NCBI RefSeq assembly: GCF_000400465.1
Contig: NW_008806274.1
Span: 150,244-182,243 of the forward strand
DNA: 32,000 nt
Direction: 5' to 3'
DNA from: Wallemia ichthyophaga EXF-994
Lineage: Eukaryota > Fungi > Basidiomycota
Shown: positions 15,128-29,354 of the stretch, piece after piece
Numbering within the stretch: the stretch's first letter is position 1
Layout of the letters: every line of letters begins with the position of its first letter
The notes under the pieces: model-generated
Databases searched by the model: none
What the model was told of the DNA's origin: nothing
What the model saw: only the letters and a program-made list of their open reading frames with translations
Position numbers and translations under genes: made by a program

Positions 15128-15221
15128 CGTCAGGAGCAGGACTCGAACCTACGCACCAGATGGTACTTGATAACGTCTGAGACATTCAAGTCAAGCGCCT
15201 TAACCACTCGGCCATCCTGAC
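15128..15221 (-). tRNA. tRNA-Ser(TGA) with ~13-nt intron
   Basis: Reverse complement: acceptor stem GTCAGGA/TCCTGAC, anticodon stem CTTGA/TCAAG, loop CT-TGA-A, long variable arm, T loop GGTTCGAGTCC, G73 discriminator, downstream TTTTT terminator. Confidence 0.9.
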
Positions 15222-15673
15222 TATAGGTGCCTACCCTACCTGCGTAACTAATACATCGAGCAAAATGCAGGAACGGGTAACATGACATCATGGTCGCTAT
15301 GAGAACAATGAGAATAAAGAATAATGAAGATTATGCATGATTATGCACGAGGACAATGAAGATAACGAAACAATGGGAATAAACCCTAAAATTCTAAACT
15401 GTTTAAACGACTACTTTTTCTTTTGATACATCTCAGACTTAATTCTTTTATTAATCTCAGCGCCTTGCCCTTTTTGTAGAGTTTCACCTCACAAAGATCA
15501 AGACGTTTACACTGACATCTGCAAGTTGAAACTTCTGCCTTACTTTAATCCGCAGCGCAGAAGATCTGATCTGGCAAAGCGGGTGCGCGGCTGCGCAGTG
15601 GGAATTGCGTGTGCACGAGTGTAAAAGGCCTAGTACTCCCCCCACGGTTGAGCGTTTGCTCCGGGAGCGGCTT

Positions 15674-16140
15674 TGATTAAGCTTCCCCGTGGTACGCAAA
15701 GTGTGGCCACACAGATCCGCTCAGGCCATTTCCCTACTGCCAAGTCTTAACGATTCCAATTAAAACTGTCCGACTCACCACTTTGCAGCAAGTGCAATGA
15801 AGTAGACAGTATACCACGCAGGATTTTCAGATGTAGGAAGTTCGATCAAGCAAGATTATCGTTGAGGAGGAGGATATATGGATTGGGTTTAAGGTTCGAG
15901 ATGAAATATATGCTTTCAAACGAAGAAGCTCTCAAAGCTCTCTACGAGTTCTTCAAAAACCAGCTCAGCACCCAACCGCGCACCTCCGTTAGCTCCACGT
16001 AGTTACCTCCCAATTGCGGCACACGTGCCAAGAATTGCATTCCTCTGAGTCACTACAATCATCAGCTTTCGATACACAAGAAGTATAGATAGGCGAAGAT
16101 TATTAATCGTTGTAACGCTTTTGACTATATATTATTATTT
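15674..16140 (+). mobile_element. Degenerate 3' end of a non-LTR retrotransposon (LINE ORF2 C-terminal zinc-knuckle region)
   Basis: Frame from 15676: IKLPRGTQSVATQIRSGHFPTAKS*RFQLKLSDSPLCSKCNEVDSIPRRIFRC...KYMLSNEEALKALYEFF. This resembles the fungal LINE consensus LPR..S.LTQLRTGH..DSPLC..C...H....C. The ATT repeat at 16131-16139 is a possible tail. Confidence 0.75.
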
Positions 16141-16742
16141 CTACCTATCATCTCCAGATCGAGAATGTCATGTTTAATGACTAGTGCGTCGTAGGACCTT
16201 GATAAATGCAAAGTCGGAGATTCTTGAATGTCATTCTGCAGCGATTGTTTTTGCGATGAATTTATTGCGAATAGCGTAGTGATGTGCACTGTACTAGTCC
16301 AATTGTGACATGCTGCAAAGAGTGTGATTTGGTTGTTAGTTTTCTACATATCTAATGTCCGACTTTTCCAATTTAAATGCAGTCTTAAACGCCTTTTCTT
16401 GCTTTTTTCCTGGAGCTGACATTGAGTCGTGTGGACCACACGCGTCTGAAAGCGCAAAACGCGTCTGATAAGCTGAGTACTTGAGTTATTTGGGTGTTTG
16501 TGATGTAAATCAGCCTGCAGAAATAAGGTGCATCGAATGGGTAAAGATTCAAGGTGAAGCTGCCATTTCTGTGATGCAAAGCCAATACACAGAAAGGGTG
16601 ATAGTGAGGCAGTATGCTTTTTACTGATTTACCAATTTACTTCTGATAAATCCAGCTGAGGTGAATTTCAAGGTGTTCTCTTGCACGCGGTGGTCAGATG
16701 TCAAGGCATCTCTTGCCCTCTCACCACCATCAAGATATCAAA

Positions 16743-17071
16743 ATGAGCACACTCAAACCAGCTGCCCCGCTATCCACAAGGAATAGCTCACCGGTGAAGA
16801 AGGGCGACGATGGTGATATCAGCAGCCCGCACGAGTTGACCGCGTTTGTGAGTTGAATGCAGCAACGCTTTCGAATCTCACGGGAATCAAGGTAGAGGAT
16901 GTGCTCAACAAGCTCGATACGAAGTTCGACACTATGTCCGGAGTTGTGTTAGAGAAGATGGATGAAATGGCGGATCGCGTTGATAGCCTCGAGAATAGTA
17001 TTCAGGGCCTGGTCAATTCAGCTGGAACGCTATCGCCCAGGCCTTCTTCTCCTCGGTCTCCAAGGATTTGA
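16743..17071 (+). CDS. HSBP1: Heat shock factor-binding protein 1 family (copy 1)
   Basis: ATG 16743, intron 16848-16891, giving ISSPHELTAF|VEDVLNKLDTKFDTMSGVVLEKMDEMADRVDSLENSIQ, a typical HSBP1 coiled coil. Confidence 0.85.
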
Positions 17072-17099
17072 TAGGATAAGTCTGAAGCAATGACGAGGA

Positions 17100-18054
17100 T
17101 GCAGAATATACCTTACACCTCTTGACTTGGAAATACCAGCTTAAATGTAAACAAATGATCCGACTTTTTGATATACATGATTCCAATTCAGAAATGCATT
17201 GATTGGGAATATACACACTAGGTTTAGAGCTTCTCTTGACGAACCAAGCGCTATCAACCACTCTGTAAAACTTGTAGCGCTCATCTTGAGTCGAGTTTGA
17301 AGGAATAGGCGCAATTGCTAGATATGGCTCGACTTGTAGCATTCCAGATTTGAGACAAGGCAAATTATTCTTCAGATGACTTTCGATTGCACCGATAAAG
17401 CGATAAGTACAAAGTCCTATAGAGGTGACAATCTCAAAGTGTGTAATATTCTAAGCATGATTGCAACTCCATATGTAAGGAAAGGGAGCGCGCAATCGTA
17501 GCTTTCTATTATGTTATCACTCAACATTTTGAGCTCTTTGATTCGACTGGCTCGCTGAACAAGTGCCAAGATCTGGGTATGTGGCTCTTTGTAATCAGAG
17601 ATTGGACCAAATCCAACTTGAAAGGTTTGGATGGGTGGTATGGCCTTGACTATATCAAAATAGCTGAAAGGAGCGTTGAGCGTAGCAGCTGGCCCATTAA
17701 TCTTGAGCTCTCTTAATTGGCCTAGAAAGAGTTTGAATCTAATTGTGCCCAATTTACGTTAAAAAATTGGCTTTTTGCTTTGTCTTTGATAAGATGGTCG
17801 AGATCCCGAATAAGCTGGTCTGAACGCGTGCCGTGGTGTGCTTTATCAATATCTCAAAAGATTTGGAATTTGCGCATGCCATGGCGTATTTCTGTCCTTC
17901 TTTTGATTTGTGGATGATAAGACTGATGAATAGTAAGAGACCAGAATAGATATGGGTATGCGAGGTTATGCAGATGTTTGCATAGCTTTGAAAAGCCAAC
18001 ATTCACTTTGAGTAACTGGATTAGGATATCATCCGGTAAATCGAAGAGATTCAC
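17100..18054 (-). pseudogene. Possible decayed F-box-like gene (copy 1)
   Basis: N-terminal LFDLPDDILIQLL...LCKHLHNLAYPYLFWSLTI is F-box-like. In-frame TGA near 17854, then apparent frameshifts into the 17417-17752 and 17013-17363 ORFs with no convincing introns. Confidence 0.45.
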
Positions 18055-18165
18055 TGTGTTGGTTCAGATATGAGGCGAAGTGGGGTAAGAATAGACTATA
18101 TCATACTTTATATAATACTTTGCGGCTAACTACAATAAAAATAGGGTATATTCTCGACCAAATCG

Positions 18166-19904
18166 TTAAAACGAAACAACAACACCGACAATCGCAGCGA
18201 TGAGACACCCTATACAGAGGGGCACGCTGACGAGTGCAGCGATACGGCATCGAAGAACCCACCTGTCCGGATAATCACGTGTGAGAGGTGGGAGTAAGCT
18301 GAGGTCCGGATCGCTTGAAACGAATTTACGCGGTTTGACACCTTGTTTGAAGAGATGGTTGGCCGAAGTTGGATTGTTAGAAGAATCCTGGTTGCCCCAG
18401 CTGGTAGCTATAGAGGATTGCGATGGGTGTGCATCCATAGCAGCGCCGCTGTCACTTCTTGCGAAACTAGCACTGCCGCTCGAGCTATTTCTCTTGTGTG
18501 TTGGTTTTTCTGACAGCGCAGTTTTCTCCTTATCGTTGTTCTGTTTCTCGGTCTCACGGATTTTGAATGCCAAGTTGATTTCATTCCATTCACTCGCCCA
18601 GTCCCTCCGCCTATCATCTGCTTTGACTCTCTGCACAGCTGCGCCGTCACGCGAATCCAGCGTCCACCCACCAATCAGCCACACCGCGGGCCCGAAGAGG
18701 AAGCCCAAGAAAAAGCAGTTAGACGCCGCACTCGAGTTCTCAGCATCGAATATGCGTGCCAAAAAAGACTTGCTCTCCAGTCCTATATCCGGAACATCCT
18801 TTACGCTCTTAATTGCGTCTGACGGCAGTGAAGCTAGTGCTCTGGCCACCGACTGCGATGATGATGCTTGTGTGTTTTCTATGTCGTGCAAATCCGAGTC
18901 GTAGACATGGATAGAAATGTGACTATCAGAGTCCGAGCTGTTTTCTGTGGTATCTGGGATGTTTGCTGATGCAGATGGCGATAAAATGTCTAAAATAATT
19001 GTCAGGTACGCAAGGTATCGGACAAACTTCACCCACTGCTTTTTCGCATCTTTTCCCAGAATGAGGGCAGTCTTTGGCGCGAATTGGTGGTATCTTGACG
19101 GTCTTCGAAACTGCTGTCGTCGAATGCCGACTTGGGTTCGCCTTCTTCTTTGAATTTGACATTGTTCGCGAGCCTAGATGCATCGTTACTGTTGTTACGA
19201 GAGCTTGCTGGTGTTGGCGACCTAGGGCCATCAATTCCAGCCTCTTCTTCCTCCTCCTCCTCCTCATCATCACCTTGCTCTTCTTCAGGAACCTCTTCAA
19301 TCCGTGAGTCGTTGTTCATAAGCTCTGTTGTGCGAGCATTCTTGAGAGTTTTAGGAGTGCGATGAGTGTTTCCAGGACTCATTGGGTGCAAGACCGGGGT
19401 TGAGGTTGTTCTAAACTTGGGAGGTGTCGGTGGGGGTATGTAGTACAAACGCTCGACCGAAGGAGACGTTTGGGTGAGCTTTGGCGGTACTGCGAGGGGC
19501 GGGGATGCGTATACTGGCTCTGGAGTTGGTGGTGGAGCGTTGTTCTTGCTATTCTCCTTGTCATTTTCAGCGCGTCGCTCCTCCTCATCGCCAATTACGA
19601 TAAGGTCCGCGAGCTTGGTCTCATTATGAGTCTTTACATCACCCTTATCCTTCTCCAATCTTAAAGACGCGCTTATCGAGGGTGGTGTGTTAGTTAGCGA
19701 GGGCGGTGTGGATGGATGTACGCCGCTGCTGACATCAAAAAGAGAACTCGCGCTATCAGAGTCAAATAGAGATTCTCTTGGTGATTTGAGATCTTCTGAG
19801 TATAGCTGAGGATAGCGAGTGGTGTGAGCGGTGTGAGCAGTGTGTGTGGATGAGTTATTCAGCTGTAAAGGCGGTGGACGTTTTCTCTCTGAATCAAGTG
19901 ACAT
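18166..19904 (-). CDS. Uncharacterised Ser/Pro/Glu-rich protein with two C-terminal hydrophobic segments (copy 1)
   Basis: ATG 19904; intron 18990-19036 (GTGGGT..CTGAC..TAG) joins the 293-aa and 288-aa ORFs. Motifs FFLGFLFGPAVWLIGGW and WVLRCRIAALVSVPLCIGCLIAAIVGVVVSF. Confidence 0.75.
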
Positions 19905-20129
19905 GCTCAAACCAACGCTAAGCGTTCAACTCTACGCCCGCTATCGCATAATCCCCTTCAAAGCAGCAGATTCATACCAACCGGGATGAATCTGCGTACG
20001 CTTGCATTCCAAACTAAATCACACAGCAGCCATGATGTACTCGTGGCTGTCTCCAAAAATTAAATTTGTACCAAACCGGTTACTCTCCAAGCCTTCTTCT
20101 CTCAGTGCGTCCAACAAGTCCCTCCAGAA

Positions 20130-20639
20130 ATGTCGTCAAGCAATTCAGACAAAGAGGCGCACAGATCGAGCACCCATCCACGGATAGTCTGTGGCGCTGT
20201 GCCAATCGACTACGACTCCAAACAGATACTGCTCATTTCCTCAAGGAAACACCAGGGCAATTGGGTACTCCCAAAGGGCGGATATGAGCTATCTGATGTG
20301 CGCCTGGAAACGGCAGCGTCGAGAGAGGCTTATGAGGAGGGTTTGTCAAATGCACGTAGCCGTGACTATCTTTGATGTAGATTACAGCCGGCGTGATTGG
20401 TCAAGTGAGGAATTTGATTCTATCAATCGACGACAAGCGGCCGATAAAAACGCTGTCTGATAGTGATCCTTTTATACCCAGAGCGCGTTACCACTTCTTC
20501 GAGTAGGTGGCTGCGTTGAAGTGGCGCTATTCGCATGCTCACCCAAATTAGAATATCAGTTGAAGATCTAAACAACACGTGGCCGGAATCTGGGGCCTCG
20601 TTCCCGTTGCGCCACGAAGGAGCGGAGAGGGTCTTCTGA
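20130..20639 (+). pseudogene. DDP1: 3'-truncated/chimeric Ddp1-like Nudix hydrolase (copy 1)
   Basis: Exons 1-3 are intact (introns 20341-20387, 20503-20551). After WPES the frame runs into junction DNA (GASFPLRHEGAERVF*) and lacks the last exon. Confidence 0.75.
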
Positions 20640-21226
20640 TCTCTATTGGCTTCACTCTCAAGCCGGCTCTCTTGAGAGTAGATGCACGTAGTTTACCAGG
20701 ACCAAAGTCGAAAGATGCAGAGAGAGAGCAATAGGTAGGATGACTTCCACACAGGCGGCCAGGATGCTGATTAAGCTTCCCCGTGGTACGCAAAGTGTGG
20801 CCACACAGATCCGCTCAGGCCATTTCCCTACTGCCAAGTCTTAACGATTCCAATTAAAACTGTCCGACTCACCACTTTGCAGCAAGTGCAATGAAGTAGA
20901 CAGTATACCACGCAGGATTTTCAGATGTAGGAAGTTCGATCAAGCAAGATTATCGTTGAGGAGGAGGATATATGGATTGGGTTTAAGGTTCGAGATGAAA
21001 TATATGCTTTCAAATGAAGAAGCTCTCAAAGCCCCTCTACGACTTCTTCAAAAACCAGCTCAGCACCCACCCGCGCGCCTCCGGTAGCTCCACGTATTTA
21101 CGCGGCACACGTGCCAAGAATTGCATTCCTCTGAGTCACTACAATCATCAGCTTTCGATACACAAGAAGTATAGATAGGCGAAGATTATTAATCGTTGTA
21201 ACGCTTTTGACTATATATTATTATTT
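20593..21226 (+). mobile_element. Second copy of LINE 3' remnant, with 175 bp of additional putative upstream LINE sequence
   Basis: Junction sequence reads in frame into the remnant: FTRTKVERCRERAIGRMTSTQAARMLIKLPRG. The remainder matches copy 1 except for a cluster at 21015-21101. Confidence 0.65.
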
Positions 21227-21828
21227 CTACCTATCATCTCCAGATCGAGAATGTCATGTTTAATGACTAGTGCGTCGTAGGACCTTGATAAATGCAAAGT
21301 CGGAGATTCTTGAATGTCATTCTGCAGCGATTGTTTTTGCGATGAATTTATTGCGAATAGCGTAGTGATGTGCACTGTACTAGTCCAATTGTGACATGCT
21401 GCAAAGAGTGTGATTTGGTTGTTAGTTTTCTACATATCTAATGTCCGACTTTTCCAATTTAAATGCAGTCTTAAACGCCTTTTCTTGCTTTTTTCCTGGA
21501 GCTGACATTGAGTCGTGTGGACCACACGCGTCTGAAAGCGCAAAACGCGTCTGATAAGCTGAGTACTTGAGTTATTTGGGTGTTTGTGATGTAAATCAGC
21601 CTGCAGAAATAAGGTGCATCGAATGGGTAAAGATTCAAGGTGAAGCTGCCATTTCTGTGATGCAAAGCCAATACACAGAAAGGGTGATAGTGAGGCAGTA
21701 TGCTTTTTACTGATTTACCAATTTACTTCTGATAAATCCAGCTGAGGTGAATTTCAAGGTGTTCTCTTGCACGCGGTGGTCAGATGTCAAGGCATCTCTT
21801 GCCCTCTCACCACCATCAAGATATCAAA

Positions 21829-22157
21829 ATGAGCACACTCAAACCAGCTGCCCCGCTATCCACAAGGAATAGCTCACCGGTGAAGAAGGGCGACGATGGT
21901 GATATCAGCAGCCCGCACGAGTTGACCGCGTTTGTGAGTTGAATGCAGCAACGCTTTCGAATCTCACGGGAATCAAGGTAGAGGATGTGCTCAACAAGCT
22001 CGATACGAAGTTCGACACTATGTCCGGAGTTGTGTTAGAGAAGATGGATGAAATGGCGGATCGCGTTGATAGCCTCGAGAATAGTATTCAGGGCCTGGTC
22101 AATTCAGCTGGAACGCTATCGCCCAGGCCTTCTTCTCCTCGGTCTCCAAGGATTTGA
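21829..22157 (+). CDS. HSBP1: Heat shock factor-binding protein 1 family (copy 2)
   Basis: Identical to copy 1 at offset 5086. Confidence 0.85.
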
Positions 22158-22185
22158 TAGGATAAGTCTGAAGCAATGACGAGGA

Positions 22186-23140
22186 TGCAGAATATACCTT
22201 ACACCTCTTGACTTGGAAATACCAGCTTAAATGTAAACAAATGATCCGACTTTTTGATATACATGATTCCAATTCAGAAATGCATTGATTGGGAATATAC
22301 ACACTAGGTTTAGAGCTTCTCTTGACGAACCAAGCGCTATCAACCACTCTGTAAAACTTGTAGCGCTCATCTTGAGTCGAGTTTGAAGGAATAGGCGCAA
22401 TTGCTAGATATGGCTCGACTTGTAGCATTCCAGATTTGAGACAAGGCAAATTATTCTTCAGATGACTTTCGATTGCACCGATAAAGCGATAAGTACAAAG
22501 TCCTATAGAGGTGACAATCTCAAAGTGTGTAATATTCTAAGCATGATTGCAACTCCATATGTAAGGAAAGGGAGCGCGCAATCGTAGCTTTCTATTATGT
22601 TATCACTCAACATTTTGAGCTCTTTGATTCGACTGGCTCGCTGAACAAGTGCCAAGATCTGGGTATGTGGCTCTTTGTAATCAGAGATTGGACCAAATCC
22701 AACTTGAAAGGTTTGGATGGGTGGTATGGCCTTGACTATATCAAAATAGCTGAAAGGAGCGTTGAGCGTAGCAGCTGGCCCATTAATCTTGAGCTCTCTT
22801 AATTGGCCTAGAAAGAGTTTGAATCTAATTGTGCCCAATTTACGTTAAAAAATTGGCTTTTTGCTTTGTCTTTGATAAGATGGTCGAGATCCCGAATAAG
22901 CTGGTCTGAACGCGTGCCGTGGTGTGCTTTATCAATATCTCAAAAGATTTGGAATTTGCGCATGCCATGGCGTATTTCTGTCCTTCTTTTGATTTGTGGA
23001 TGATAAGACTGATGAATAGTAAGAGACCAGAATAGATATGGGTATGCGAGGTTATGCAGATGTTTGCATAGCTTTGAAAAGCCAACATTCACTTTGAGTA
23101 ACTGGATTAGGATATCATCCGGTAAATCGAAGAGATTCAC
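22186..23140 (-). pseudogene. Possible decayed F-box-like gene (copy 2)
   Basis: Identical duplicate of 17100-18054. Confidence 0.45.
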
Positions 23141-23251
23141 TGTGTTGGTTCAGATATGAGGCGAAGTGGGGTAAGAATAGACTATATCATACTTTATATA
23201 ATACTTTGCGGCTAACTACAATAAAAATAGGGTATATTCTCGACCAAATCG

Positions 23252-24990
23252 TTAAAACGAAACAACAACACCGACAATCGCAGCGATGAGACACCCTATA
23301 CAGAGGGGCACGCTGACGAGTGCAGCGATACGGCATCGAAGAACCCACCTGTCCGGATAATCACGTGTGAGAGGTGGGAGTAAGCTGAGGTCCGGATCGC
23401 TTGAAACGAATTTACGCGGTTTGACACCTTGTTTGAAGAGATGGTTGGCCGAAGTTGGATTGTTAGAAGAATCCTGGTTGCCCCAGCTGGTAGCTATAGA
23501 GGATTGCGATGGGTGTGCATCCATAGCAGCGCCGCTGTCACTTCTTGCGAAACTAGCACTGCCGCTCGAGCTATTTCTCTTGTGTGTTGGTTTTTCTGAC
23601 AGCGCAGTTTTCTCCTTATCGTTGTTCTGTTTCTCGGTCTCACGGATTTTGAATGCCAAGTTGATTTCATTCCATTCACTCGCCCAGTCCCTCCGCCTAT
23701 CATCTGCTTTGACTCTCTGCACAGCTGCGCCGTCACGCGAATCCAGCGTCCACCCACCAATCAGCCACACCGCGGGCCCGAAGAGGAAGCCCAAGAAAAA
23801 GCAGTTAGACGCCGCACTCGAGTTCTCAGCATCGAATATGCGTGCCAAAAAAGACTTGCTCTCCAGTCCTATATCCGGAACATCCTTTACGCTCTTAATT
23901 GCGTCTGACGGCAGTGAAGCTAGTGCTCTGGCCACCGACTGCGATGATGATGCTTGTGTGTTTTCTATGTCGTGCAAATCCGAGTCGTAGACATGGATAG
24001 AAATGTGACTATCAGAGTCCGAGCTGTTTTCTGTGGTATCTGGGATGTTTGCTGATGCAGATGGCGATAAAATGTCTAAAATAATTGTCAGGTACGCAAG
24101 GTATCGGACAAACTTCACCCACTGCTTTTTCGCATCTTTTCCCAGAATGAGGGCAGTCTTTGGCGCGAATTGGTGGTATCTTGACGGTCTTCGAAACTGC
24201 TGTCGTCGAATGCCGACTTGGGTTCGCCTTCTTCTTTGAATTTGACATTGTTCGCGAGCCTAGATGCATCGTTACTGTTGTTACGAGAGCTTGCTGGTGT
24301 TGGCGACCTAGGGCCATCAATTCCAGCCTCTTCTTCCTCCTCCTCCTCCTCATCATCACCTTGCTCTTCTTCAGGAACCTCTTCAATCCGTGAGTCGTTG
24401 TTCATAAGCTCTGTTGTGCGAGCATTCTTGAGAGTTTTAGGAGTGCGATGAGTGTTTCCAGGACTCATTGGGTGCAAGACCGGGGTTGAGGTTGTTCTAA
24501 ACTTGGGAGGTGTCGGTGGGGGTATGTAGTACAAACGCTCGACCGAAGGAGACGTTTGGGTGAGCTTTGGCGGTACTGCGAGGGGCGGGGATGCGTATAC
24601 TGGCTCTGGAGTTGGTGGTGGAGCGTTGTTCTTGCTATTCTCCTTGTCATTTTCAGCGCGTCGCTCCTCCTCATCGCCAATTACGATAAGGTCCGCGAGC
24701 TTGGTCTCATTATGAGTCTTTACATCACCCTTATCCTTCTCCAATCTTAAAGACGCGCTTATCGAGGGTGGTGTGTTAGTTAGCGAGGGCGGTGTGGATG
24801 GATGTACGCCGCTGCTGACATCAAAAAGAGAACTCGCGCTATCAGAGTCAAATAGAGATTCTCTTGGTGATTTGAGATCTTCTGAGTATAGCTGAGGATA
24901 GCGAGTGGTGTGAGCGGTGTGAGCAGTGTGTGTGGATGAGTTATTCAGCTGTAAAGGCGGTGGACGTTTTCTCTCTGAATCAAGTGACAT
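23252..24990 (-). CDS. Uncharacterised membrane protein (copy 2)
   Basis: Identical duplicate at offset 5086. Confidence 0.75.
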
Positions 24991-25215
24991 GCTCAAACCA
25001 ACGCTAAGCGTTCAACTCTACGCCCGCTATCGCATAATCCCCTTCAAAGCAGCAGATTCATACCAACCGGGATGAATCTGCGTACGCTTGCATTCCAAAC
25101 TAAATCACACAGCAGCCATGATGTACTCGTGGCTGTCTCCAAAAATTAAATTTGTACCAAACCGGTTACTCTCCAAGCCTTCTTCTCTCAGTGCGTCCAA
25201 CAAGTCCCTCCAGAA

Positions 25216-25837
25216 ATGTCGTCAAGCAATTCAGACAAAGAGGCGCACAGATCGAGCACCCATCCACGGATAGTCTGTGGCGCTGTGCCAATCGACTACG
25301 ACTCCAAACAGATACTGCTCATTTCCTCAAGGAAACACCAGGGCAATTGGGTACTCCCAAAGGGCGGATATGAGCTATCTGATGTGCGCCTGGAAACGGC
25401 AGCGTCGAGAGAGGCTTATGAGGAGGGTTTGTCAAATGCACGTAGCCGTGACTATCTTTGATGTAGATTACAGCCGGCGTGATTGGTCAAGTGAGGAATT
25501 TGATTCTATCAATCGACGACAAGCGGCCGATAAAAACGCTGTCTGATAGTGATCCTTTTATACCCAGAGCGCGTTACCACTTCTTCGAGTAGGTGGCTGC
25601 GTTGAAGTGGCGCTATTCGCATGCTCACCCAAATTAGAATATCAGTTGAAGATCTAAACAACACGTGGCCGGAATCTGTGAGTTGTGGTGGGATACATTG
25701 GTAACTCATCTAAACAGCATCAGAAGGAGCGTGAAAGGTGTTGGTTTTCATTGAGCGATGCGCTGCATAGAGTCAGCTGGAGGGACGAGCAGAGGGCTGC
25801 ACTTCTCGCGTGTAGCTTGAACCCGCCATCAAGTTAG
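25216..25837 (+). CDS. DDP1: Ddp1/Aps1-like diphosphoinositol/diadenosine polyphosphate Nudix hydrolase (intact)
   Basis: Nudix box LPKGGYELSDVRLETAASREAYEEAGV, LLISSRK, RYHFFE, WPES|..ERERCWFSL. Three introns; the third starts at 25678. Confidence 0.85.
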
Positions 25838-26514: not shown

Positions 26515-26597
26515 TGACCGATGAGAGATTCGAACTCCCGACCTCCAGATAGCACCTTCTATTGGAATCTGTTGCGCTACCACTGCGCCAATCAGCC
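26515..26597 (-). tRNA. tRNA-Trp(CCA) with ~11-nt intron
   Basis: Reverse complement GGCTGATTGGCGCAGTGGTAGCGCAACAGATTCCAA[TAGAAGGTGCT]ATCTGGAGGTCGGGAGTTCGAATCTCTCATCGGTCA folds as a cloverleaf, with an A27-G43 mismatch and several G-U pairs. Confidence 0.87.
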
Positions 26598-27101: not shown

Positions 27102-29354
27102 TCAAGCCTTCTTATAGATGTCGAAGGGATCTCGTTTGATTTTCTTGTATGAATTCTTGGTTGGAGATGTGTGGTTACTACCAATTAATGCGATCTCTTG
27201 CTGCGTCAGACAGTCATCAAGGCTTAAGGCAGTGAGCTTGAAATAATGCTCAGTCTAGGAAATACTTACTGCTTGTTAATAGTATCGTTCGACATATTCG
27301 GATCGCCAGTGATGTTAAATTTCTTGGCGCAAACGGGACATTTGAGAATATCGGGTGCATCTGGAGCATTCGATGTACCTGCACACTCTTTCTCCGTTTC
27401 TTTGCGCTTTGGCTTTGGTATAAATACATCTACATCGCTATCACTCTCGTCGAGATCATCGAAGAAAGGTTTCTGTTGTGTCTTGAGGGTATCAGATGTA
27501 TGCTTGTCTTTAGATGCATCACTTGCTGTTGTATTTCCACTCTCATCGAGATCGTTGAAGAAAGGTTTTTGTTGTGTCTTGAGGGTATCAGATGTATGCT
27601 TGTCTTTAGATGCACCGCTTGCTGCTTCAATCTCCTTTTCTTTTCCGAGAACTGGCTTTTCGATGATTTCAACATCACTATCAGTGTCATTGGGGGTATG
27701 GTTTTTACTACTTTCCTGCTGCTGTTTGGTCAAGAACTGAGTGATTTCACCCCTAGCGCTGCCGACAAACTGTAGGTTAGTAAGACGCACTCCCAGTAGC
27801 CGCAGTGTCAATGGTAGCTCTCTCTCTAAGAGCCCTCTCGCGACTGGCCATATATCCTCAGAGGTGCACACGAAGCGCTCCACCGACATGGCCCGTGTGA
27901 AGTTCTCAAACGTGTGTTTCTTATACTTGAGCGTAACAGTACGTCCTTTGAACTGGGTTCTTCTAAGATCGGCTTCGAGTTCATGGCAGAGCATGTGCAA
28001 TTTCTCCAGAAGAGCAATGCTGTCTGAGAGAGGCTGGAATGTTTTCTCTGTGCCGACACTCTTCCTGTCTTCCCTGCAAGGTTTGTTAGCAGGCGGTTAA
28101 AGTGTGCTGCGCTGTACGCACTGCTTCGCTGGAGCGACAACGTTGCTGAATATACCGAGATAGGCGCGTAGGAGACCCTCCGACTGCAGCTCTTTGCGCA
28201 GGAGGTGTATCTCCACCAGATGTTCTGCTATATCGCCGCATGCATTAATACCGAGGGATTGTAGCAGACGCTCGTTGATGCGACCGATGCCAGGCACCTG
28301 CTCAAGTTGCAGTGCATCTGCGTAGCTAAAATCAACAACCCACCTTGCGTATCGGGAGATCTTTCATGAAAGCGCGTACGGCATCCAGGGAGAACTGCAT
28401 AGTATATTCACCATTTGGTTTGTTCTGTGGTGTGTGTTGGTGGCGTGCTTAGGTAAGTTATCACGCCTCACTTTATCTGAACAGATCTGGATTAAAGTTG
28501 TATTACGTCAGACGTATTTCTATGTGTATGTGCGCACCTTGGCTAATGTTTTGTTAGGTGCGACGCCCGTCGACACAGTGAGACCTGTCTCTGCATGCAC
28601 CGCGCTGCGTAGACGCTGCGAGACCTCTTGTGGCGTGAGGGCATGTTCATTCATGTACGCAGTCACGCTTGAGGATTGTGAGTATGACACTACTCAGCAC
28701 TCTTTACCCACTTGAGATACGCTTCATCAAGCGATGCTGCTGCCATATTCTCGTCGAATCGCGCGAAGATATCCATCACCTGCCTGGACTGCATAGTAAT
28801 GTGAATGAGTGCCATAGAACACTCCACCAACCCACCTTATCGACATATCTTTCCATCCGCATGGGGACTTCAATGAAATGATCGCACAACTTCCGCGCTA
28901 TGAAGCACGGCATGGCTGAGCGAATGCCATACTTTCGCGCTTCGTAAGACGCAGTCGTGAGGATGCCTTTACCGACGCCAAATGGCTTTCCATGGAGATC
29001 TGGGTTGTCGAGCACTTCCACGGCAGCGTAAAACATATCCATGTCACAATGCATTATAAATTGGCTCAAGTCGCGCTCAGCGTCCATATTCTTTAGTGTG
29101 CTATGTACGGAGTGCAATATTGACGACTGATTTGCATTCTCCAAGCGCTGTTTGAGAATATTTTGGATAGCGGCTACTTTCGCCGTTGTGTGCTCGTCAC
29201 GCTTTACCTCATTGTTGAAGAAGCGTCCGCCTTTGCTGGCATCGTGGATAATGTGGTTGATGCGCTCTTGGTTGGAATCTAGACCAGCCTTGCCAGCGGA
29301 AGGACCGGCTAGCCTGCGTAGCAGACTGTTGCTATCTGATGATGATGACGACAT
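27102..29354 (-). CDS. POLK: Y-family DNA polymerase kappa (DinB) with C-terminal UBZ4
   Basis: HCDMDMFYAAVE, TTASYEARKYGIRSAMP, SLDEAYL, VPGIGRI, RKSVGTERTF, LRLLGVRL. UBZ CPVC...INKH|LDDC is completed by intron 27223-27269. About 7 introns. Confidence 0.93.
27442..27624. repeat. In-frame 96-bp-period tandem duplication inside POLK
   Basis: 27442-27528 vs 27538-27624, 6 mismatches in 87 bp by eye; encodes ASKDKHTSDTLKTQQKPFF(N/D)DLDES twice. Confidence 0.92.

Follow-up and report, generated by a model that had tools for sequence, protein, structure and literature searches.

Spontaneous segmental duplications in yeast reportedly arise by Pol32-dependent, replication-based repair of broken forks that uses microhomology or none (work said to be that of Koszul et al. 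2004 and Payen et al. 2008). Complex rearrangements are likewise said to arise by template switching, through fork stalling and template switching (FoSTeS) or microhomology-mediated break-induced replication (MMBIR), as reportedly set out by Lee, Carvalho and Lupski 2007 and Hastings et al. 2009. Draft assemblies in turn reportedly contain false duplications (Kelley and Salzberg 2010 and Ko et al. 2022 are said to describe them). A locus that can be compared with all three was analysed in the fungus Wallemia ichthyophaga EXF-994, a strain also held as CBS 113033. Within a window of 32,000 nucleotides (the whole stretch of DNA analysed, in whose numbering all positions are given), two direct copies of a 4.9-kb block, U1 and U2, carry an HSBP1 gene, a gene for a membrane protein, and a DDP1-type Nudix gene that is truncated in U1. 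We give an even chance to the reading that the duplication is real, very young and a product of non-homologous or template-switch repair, and that the single patch of sequence that differs between the copies is artefactual.

With the yeast duplications the locus shares a local, direct, kilobase-scale arrangement, the lack of flanking repeats, junctions with 0-1 nt of homology, breakpoints in genes and a tRNA gene nearby. It differs from them in having two new junctions and a 6-bp loss, not one head-to-tail junction; its 4.9 kb lies at the small end of the range, the material is the assembly of a natural isolate, not an experimental selection, and the mechanism is a proposed one. Compared with FoSTeS/MMBIR events, the likeness consists in a 181-bp deletion-like jump combined with a 5.09-kb duplication back, in blunt or 1-nt junctions, and in a possible mutation cluster about 0.5 kb off, but the EXF-994 cluster is too dense and may be an artefact, and the junctions carry no inserted templated snippets. 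The false duplications of draft assemblies resemble the locus in their adjacent, near-identical copies, seen in one short-read assembly and absent from others, and in a low-quality-looking stretch; EXF-994 differs in being treated as haploid, in having no gap Ns beside the copies, and in that both junctions are non-homologous and cannot come from graph overlap.

Self-BLAST of the window returned a direct repeat pair, 15674-20592 and 20768-25678, with 99.654% identity over 4920 columns and 7 mismatches. A base-by-base alignment confined all differences between the copies to 15921-16015 in U1, equivalent to 21015-21101 in U2; the remaining ~4.82 kb is identical, with 247 bp to the left of this patch and 4577 bp to its right. 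A 4.9-kb repeat at such identity cannot be of chance origin. The parts of the locus are as follows, A being the left flank and B the sequence that follows U2.

15674 to 20592: U1, the extra copy, 4919 bp, between flank A and S; population-type sequence throughout
20593 to 20767: S, 175 bp; the native stretch directly upstream of the single copy in the other strains examined, not inserted filler
20768 to 25678: U2, 4911 bp, in the ancestral context S-U-B
15673/15674 (feature 15668 to 15680): A-U1 junction, GCGGCTT joined to TGATTAAGC, where other strains read GCGGCTT-TTGGAC-GGGCCTCG; longer string, GGGAGCGGCTT joined to TGATTAAGCTTCC
20592/20593 (feature 20586 to 20600): U1-S junction, GGAATCTG joined to GGGCCTCG; longer string, GGCCGGAATCTG joined to GGGCCTCGTTCC
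15921 to 16015: patch, copy-1 version, the same as in nine of nine other strains and invariant there
21015 to 21101: patch, copy-2 version, with 7 substitutions, 1 bp gained and 9 bp lost; 17 alignment columns private to the assembly

The window contains no Ns. Over 21.7 kb it matches scaffold KE007224.1 with 100% identity; this scaffold belongs to the EXF-994 reference (GCA_000400465.1), a short-read assembly from 2013. The duplication is already present in the public annotation of this strain, which lists in succession a 159-aa Nudix protein, a 563-aa protein, a 94-aa HSBP1, a 137-aa Nudix protein, a second 563-aa protein and a second 94-aa HSBP1. A preliminary description of the window, made from its letters, had reported two direct copies between 15674 and 25678, a gap of 175 bp, and one 95-bp patch as the only site of difference, and the alignments agree with it on each of these, the gap being exactly 175 bp. 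Its gene content (HSBP1, a membrane protein and a Nudix gene) is likewise borne out by matches to PF06825 and PF00293 and by the annotation, in which the two intact genes that it took to be doubled appear as two 563-aa and two 94-aa proteins, and its one intact and one truncated DDP1 as 159 aa (copy 2) and 137 aa (copy 1).

The block was compared with nine other strains of the species: SPNX, SPOB, SPOL, SPOD, SPOQ, SPOE, SPOF, SPNZ and SPOR. It is single-copy in all nine, whose contigs run straight through A-TTGGAC-S-U-B; to the left of the unit each reads ...GGGAGCGGCTT-TTGGAC-GGGCCTCGTTCCCG..., and the ancestral border string is GCGGCTTTTGGACGGGCCTCG. In the wider set of 16 other W. ichthyophaga assemblies, which includes these nine, the cluster of the 563-aa protein is represented by one contig in each. 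Judged from these sequences, the ancestral state is the single-copy order A-TTGGAC-S-U-B, and EXF-994 has the order A-U-S-U-B, in which TTGGAC has given way to a whole U that lies between A and S and ends up 181 bp upstream of the place of the original unit. Since the single-copy strains carry S in this position, S is the native upstream flank of the block and not a spacer made by the event. The arrangement is therefore not, as the preliminary description had it, a tandem pair separated by 175 unique bp: the extra U was inserted between A and S. The same description had left the choice between a very recent event and a misassembly. That choice stands, and the comparison across strains that it had proposed places the duplication, among the ten assemblies compared, in EXF-994 only, as a private event or a misassembly.

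In Wallemia hederae, only the membrane-protein and Nudix genes and the downstream tRNA could be aligned at the DNA level (about 70% identity), in one alignable copy, and at the A/S border no W. hederae alignment was usable as an outgroup. Logan contigs from three public read sets (SRR25393947, SRR25394054 and SRR25393958; L004-L006) are 98.9% identical to the locus; the longest, of 5388 nt, ends about 100 nt from the patch position. Their divergence of about 1.1% indicates that they stem from strains other than EXF-994, and on sequence grounds those samples contain a strain like W. ichthyophaga. The Logan contigs that carry the locus reach neither of the new junctions.

The event left two new junctions together with the loss of 6 bp (TTGGAC), and its template starts 181 bp away. 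Microhomology at the A-U1 junction is at most 1 nt (T), and at the U1-S junction there is none. No k-mer of 10 nt or longer is shared between the junction sequences and the alternative paths, the longest common strings being 5-9 nt and lying away from the junctions. Neither flanking repeats nor terminal inverted repeats nor a target-site duplication were found at the unit, which shows the 6-bp deletion instead, and DNA secondary structure at the three ancestral breakpoints was no better than in shuffled sequence (z = 0.19, -0.15 and 0.59). A simple head-to-tail tandem duplication was rejected, as it needs one new junction, whereas A-U1 and U1-S are both new and S is absent after A. Non-allelic homologous recombination or unequal crossing-over was rejected as well, the borders having no repeats besides the copies themselves and sharing strings of just 5-9 nt. 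The locus shows the features of a non-homologous or template-switch (MMBIR-like) local duplication, namely 0-1 nt of microhomology, no flanking homology, two joins, a small loss and a nearby template. The lack of flanking repeats, together with the retention of introns in the copies, fits non-homologous or replicative repair.

When U1 and U2 were aligned with the sequences of the nine strains, 66 columns varied among the strains other than EXF-994. EXF-994 alone carries a further six alleles (at 16375, 17695, 18784, 18997, 18998 and 19084), and all six are present in both copies, indicating that both derive from the EXF-994 haplotype. U1 has no change of its own anywhere. The closest strain, SPOL, differs from either copy at 6 sites outside the patch, over the same 4.8 kb in which the copies do not differ at all. 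From this lack of differences the event, or the artefact, is dated by sequence comparison to after the split from the nearest sampled strain. The private variant at 19084 (24170 in copy 2) alters a residue of the membrane protein (DTT-N-SRQ), which is N in both copies of EXF-994 and I in all other strains; strain E3P86 additionally has L for the S that follows this residue.

The 95-bp patch is intergenic and lies about 730 bp upstream of the start codon of HSBP1 copy 2. Its seven substitutions comprise 3 transitions and 4 transversions, and copy 2 has one extra C near the left edge and the 9-bp deletion at the right edge; k-mers specific to the copy-2 version include CAAAGCCCCTCTACGACTTC and CACGTATTTACGCGGCAC. 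By comparison with the strains, the patch is more than a neutral difference: the sequence found in the population is that of copy 1, and the version in copy 2 is derived. Over 16.7 kb of single-copy-equivalent sequence, the other differences private to the reference are isolated sites, three of them in A, six in U and five in B, and the patch is the only cluster. A search of the window and of all fetched loci turned up no donor template for the copy-2 version. Because the site is invariant in nine strains and the copy-2 version is unique, the patch looks like a gap-closing scar, and its divergence of about 10%, mostly in transversions, the indels at both edges and its length of 87-95 bp resemble what would be left if a gap had been closed with a single short read of poor quality. 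The read length assumed here is that of BGI practice at the time, the genome paper giving none. The copy-2 patch is thus most likely an artefact of short-read gap closing and not biological; a biological mutation cluster of this density, in a duplication otherwise free of mutations, is much less likely. Repeat-induced point mutation of the duplicated segment was also considered and rejected: the copies differ by just 7 substitutions, all within 82 bp, with 3 transitions to 4 transversions and no spread of C-to-T or G-to-A changes.

Two Illumina libraries, of 500 bp and 2 kb, underlie the EXF-994 assembly, which was built by SOAPdenovo 1.04 (K=21) at a coverage above 270x, after a lenient read quality filter, and comprises 101 contigs in 82 scaffolds with 1.67% repeats (PMC3849046). 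Variant calling in the later population study was set to haploid (PMC6738226). The duplication is mentioned in neither of these papers, and the supplements of the genome paper (PMC3849046) do not list the six EOR accessions. A literature search found no long-read assembly of W. ichthyophaga, and no independent EXF-994 read set was found. Open reading frames that cross the A-U1 and U1-S junctions had no match in a collection of 5.8 billion proteins; as not even the single-copy strains gave a match, such non-coding frames are simply not called. Exact look-ups of the 288-aa and 291-aa unspliced open reading frames of the window returned no record, and for the 288-aa frame the GTG start alone may account for the miss.

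The chief alternative to a real duplication, and a less probable one in our judgement, is that EXF-994 has one real copy and that the second copy, its junctions and the patch were made by SOAPdenovo during scaffolding or gap closing, possibly through a loop from chimeric 2-kb junction reads (if that library was a circularised mate-pair one) followed by iterative gap filling. Several observations are what such an error would produce and weigh against a real event. Neither the 500-bp nor the 2-kb library spans the 4.58 kb of identity, a perfect repeat that K=21 cannot resolve either, so that a correct, gap-free reconstruction of two copies is unexpected. The copies agree even in the six private variants, as if one sequence had been written twice, and the lone divergent stretch, which is read-sized, error-rich and unique to this assembly, shows that the assembler had trouble at exactly this place. 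The duplication appears in one of the ten assemblies compared and in no other strain examined, which is equally expected of a real strain-private event, and the junctions lack confirmation from independent data: neither EXF-994 reads nor a long-read assembly came to light, and both Wallemia papers are silent on the duplication. Short-read assemblers, however, normally collapse repeats and do not expand them. The usual routes to false duplication are also missing, as the strain was treated as haploid, so that two haplotypes do not offer a cause, there are no Ns in or near the copies, and outside the patch the copies show no divergence of the kind seen between haplotypes. A single-copy genome gives the graph no reason to branch at the exact ends of U, and without k-mers of 10 nt or longer in common a de Bruijn assembler at K=21 cannot join the junction sequences unless reads span them. 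A separate artefact would be required for each of the two non-homologous junctions, which differ from one another, and for the clean loss of 6 bp, whereas together they are an outcome of break repair; the reads presumably support both junctions.

A further reading, which we consider unlikely, accepts duplication and patch alike as real, the patch being a cluster of errors from error-prone synthesis after a template switch of the MMBIR/FoSTeS type, or a short conversion tract from a diverged template. Replicative repair (break-induced replication and MMBIR) is mutagenic near breakpoints; the patch is the only cluster and lies 423-509 bp downstream of the U1-S junction, and a replicative model with two switches would make S-U2 the new DNA and so place errors where they are observed. 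Break-and-insert models, by comparison, make U1 the new copy and would leave a real patch in U2 unexplained. On the other side, the 422 bp from the junction to the patch are free of errors, no donor was found in the window and the fetched loci, the patch has the size of one short read, and the clusters reported around repair events are far sparser than a divergence of about 10% over 87 bp that includes two indels and 4 transversions among 7 substitutions. Gene conversion of an old duplication, which would make the patch the one stretch still unconverted, could also leave near-identity with one divergent island, but it is very improbable and in practice refuted, for nine of nine other strains examined are single-copy with A-TTGGAC-S intact, the W. 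hederae contig has one alignable copy of the membrane-protein and Nudix genes, and the divergent version of the patch is derived and private to this assembly. Equally improbable is movement of the unit as, or by, a mobile element, whether a transposon with host genes or retroposition. A discrete block at a new site, with a dispersed repeat of about 200 bp and a tRNA gene 160-450 bp away, might suggest it; the unit nevertheless has no terminal repeats and a 6-bp deletion where a target-site duplication would be expected, its open reading frames include no transposase or reverse-transcriptase domain, and it keeps all introns, has genes on both strands and ends inside a gene. All explanations apart from a false duplication and a real one, with either view of the patch, together have very little probability.

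If the duplication is real, the A/S border, which has an intron-containing tRNA-Ser gene about 450 bp away and a short dispersed repeat about 160 bp away, may have suffered a break or a fork stall that was repaired off the sister chromatid, out of register. On one route, a DNA end would use 1 nt of homology to prime where U begins, copy 4.9 kb and be end-joined to the other end, which lacked TTGGAC. On the other, the nascent strand would switch template twice, forward by 181 bp and then back by 5.09 kb. Either route would leave two blunt or 1-nt-microhomology junctions. The copied block would comprise the HSBP1 promoter and gene, the membrane-protein gene, a shared divergent promoter and the first three DDP1 exons. 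W. ichthyophaga has extra end-joining genes (PMC3849046), which is compatible with this repair model and is not evidence for it.

The genes of the block are listed below.

16743 to 17071, plus strand: HSBP1 copy 1, 94 aa, one intron (16848-16891)
21829 to 22157, plus strand: HSBP1 copy 2, same as copy 1
18166 to 19904, minus strand: membrane protein copy 1, 563 aa, intron 18990-19036
23252 to 24990, minus strand: membrane protein copy 2, same as copy 1
20130 to 20639, plus strand: truncated DDP1-type Nudix gene, 137 aa, of which 122 residues are native and 15 are read from S (GASFPLRHEGAERVF)
25216 to 25837, plus strand: intact DDP1-type Nudix gene, 159 aa, introns 25427-25473, 25589-25637 and 25678-25723

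By its match to PF06825 (64.7 bits against a cut-off of 28.6), the first gene is assigned to the HSBP1 family; HSBP1 is a regulator of heat-shock factor. The two 563-aa membrane proteins are EOR04667 and EOR04670, and the spliced gene model equals a W. ichthyophaga hypothetical protein. They have two transmembrane or hydrophobic segments near the C-terminus, and no Pfam family matched. Among 1.84 billion representative proteins, just six matches were found at E<=1e-3, which suggests that this protein is essentially restricted to the Wallemia lineage. Its relatives are one protein in W. hederae, with 73% identity, and another, with 75%, that is encoded on contigs assembled from reads.

The Nudix gene is divergent from the membrane-protein gene, with a 225-bp intergenic region between the two. 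It matches PF00293 at 55.5 bits, and the best PDB matches of its product are the yeast Ddp1 entries 7AUI and 7AUU (E = 4e-22, query residues 8-149), which place it by sequence in the DDP1/DIPP type. Like yeast Ddp1 and human DIPP (NUDT3), which are diphosphoinositol polyphosphate phosphohydrolases, it aligns over the Nudix box and the WPE...R.R motif region. It differs from them in copy 1, which stops after WPES without the last 37 residues. The unit ends at 25678, the base with which the GTGAGT donor of intron 3 starts, and copy 1 is consequently left without the last exon (37 aa). Its product reads ...WPES-GASFPLRHEGAERVF, keeps the Nudix box and covers only profile positions 6-101 of 134. 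Lacking the C-terminal part of the Nudix fold, the truncated protein is probably inactive. The truncated copy stops exactly at an exon boundary, which is probably a coincidence, since the other introns are kept and the copy is hence no retrocopy.

Both HSBP1 copies appear to retain at least 1 kb of upstream DNA, and the membrane-protein genes and DDP1 5' parts of both copies the shared divergent promoter; with promoters kept, the dosage of HSBP1 and of the membrane protein would double. With its terminator missing, a truncated DDP1 transcript would continue through S in the direction of the HSBP1 copy-2 promoter. If the event is real, the type strain EXF-994, on which expression and physiology have been studied, has a doubled HSBP1 and a doubled orphan membrane protein as well as a truncated DDP1, unlike its relatives. 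It would also be a natural case of a compact fungal genome (1.67% repeats) gaining genes through non-homologous local duplication, with both breakpoints resolved to the base and the ancestral state fixed by the strain population. Were the patch real too, the locus would be a newborn two-switch rearrangement in a natural isolate, with a synthesis scar about 0.5 kb from the junction and HSBP1 doubled in an extreme halophile. We know of no sexual cycle demonstrated in W. ichthyophaga. If the duplication is an artefact, three RefSeq/GenBank models are spurious (one of EOR04667 and EOR04670, one HSBP1 and the 137-aa Nudix protein), and the reads of other strains, when mapped to this reference, would be split between the copies, with a loss of mapping quality over 10 kb. 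In either case the locus is an ordinary young, strain-private local duplication or a 2013 draft error, whose mechanism and genes would not surprise a specialist, and the practical value of the finding is a flag on the reference annotation.

Two tRNA genes with introns bracket the region, at 15128-15221 (minus strand, about 450 bp off) and 26515-26597 (minus strand, about 840 bp off), with Rfam scores of 51.8 and 52.4 bits. The former was left unnamed by ARAGORN and by eye is Ser(UGA) with an intron; the latter was called Ile(AAT) by ARAGORN, and its loop, TTCCAAT, also fits Trp(CCA) with an intron. An element of about 200 bp at 15315-15516 adjoins the first tRNA gene and is also found at 12865-13066 of L010 and 1-118 of L001, two of the fetched loci. 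SPOQ has a second, adjacent copy of it, SPNX an inverted copy past the tRNA gene at 26515-26597, and three short-read contigs end at the element. It has the look of a tRNA-associated dispersed repeat and may be a solo long terminal repeat or similar to a short interspersed element. Further to the right, 1.9 copies of a tandem repeat whose period is 96 nt (27442-27624; two 87-nt cores, 93% identical) lie in frame in a gene for a Y-family (IMS) DNA polymerase (about 29354 to 27102, minus strand), and all strain assemblies in which this gene is covered have the repeat pair.

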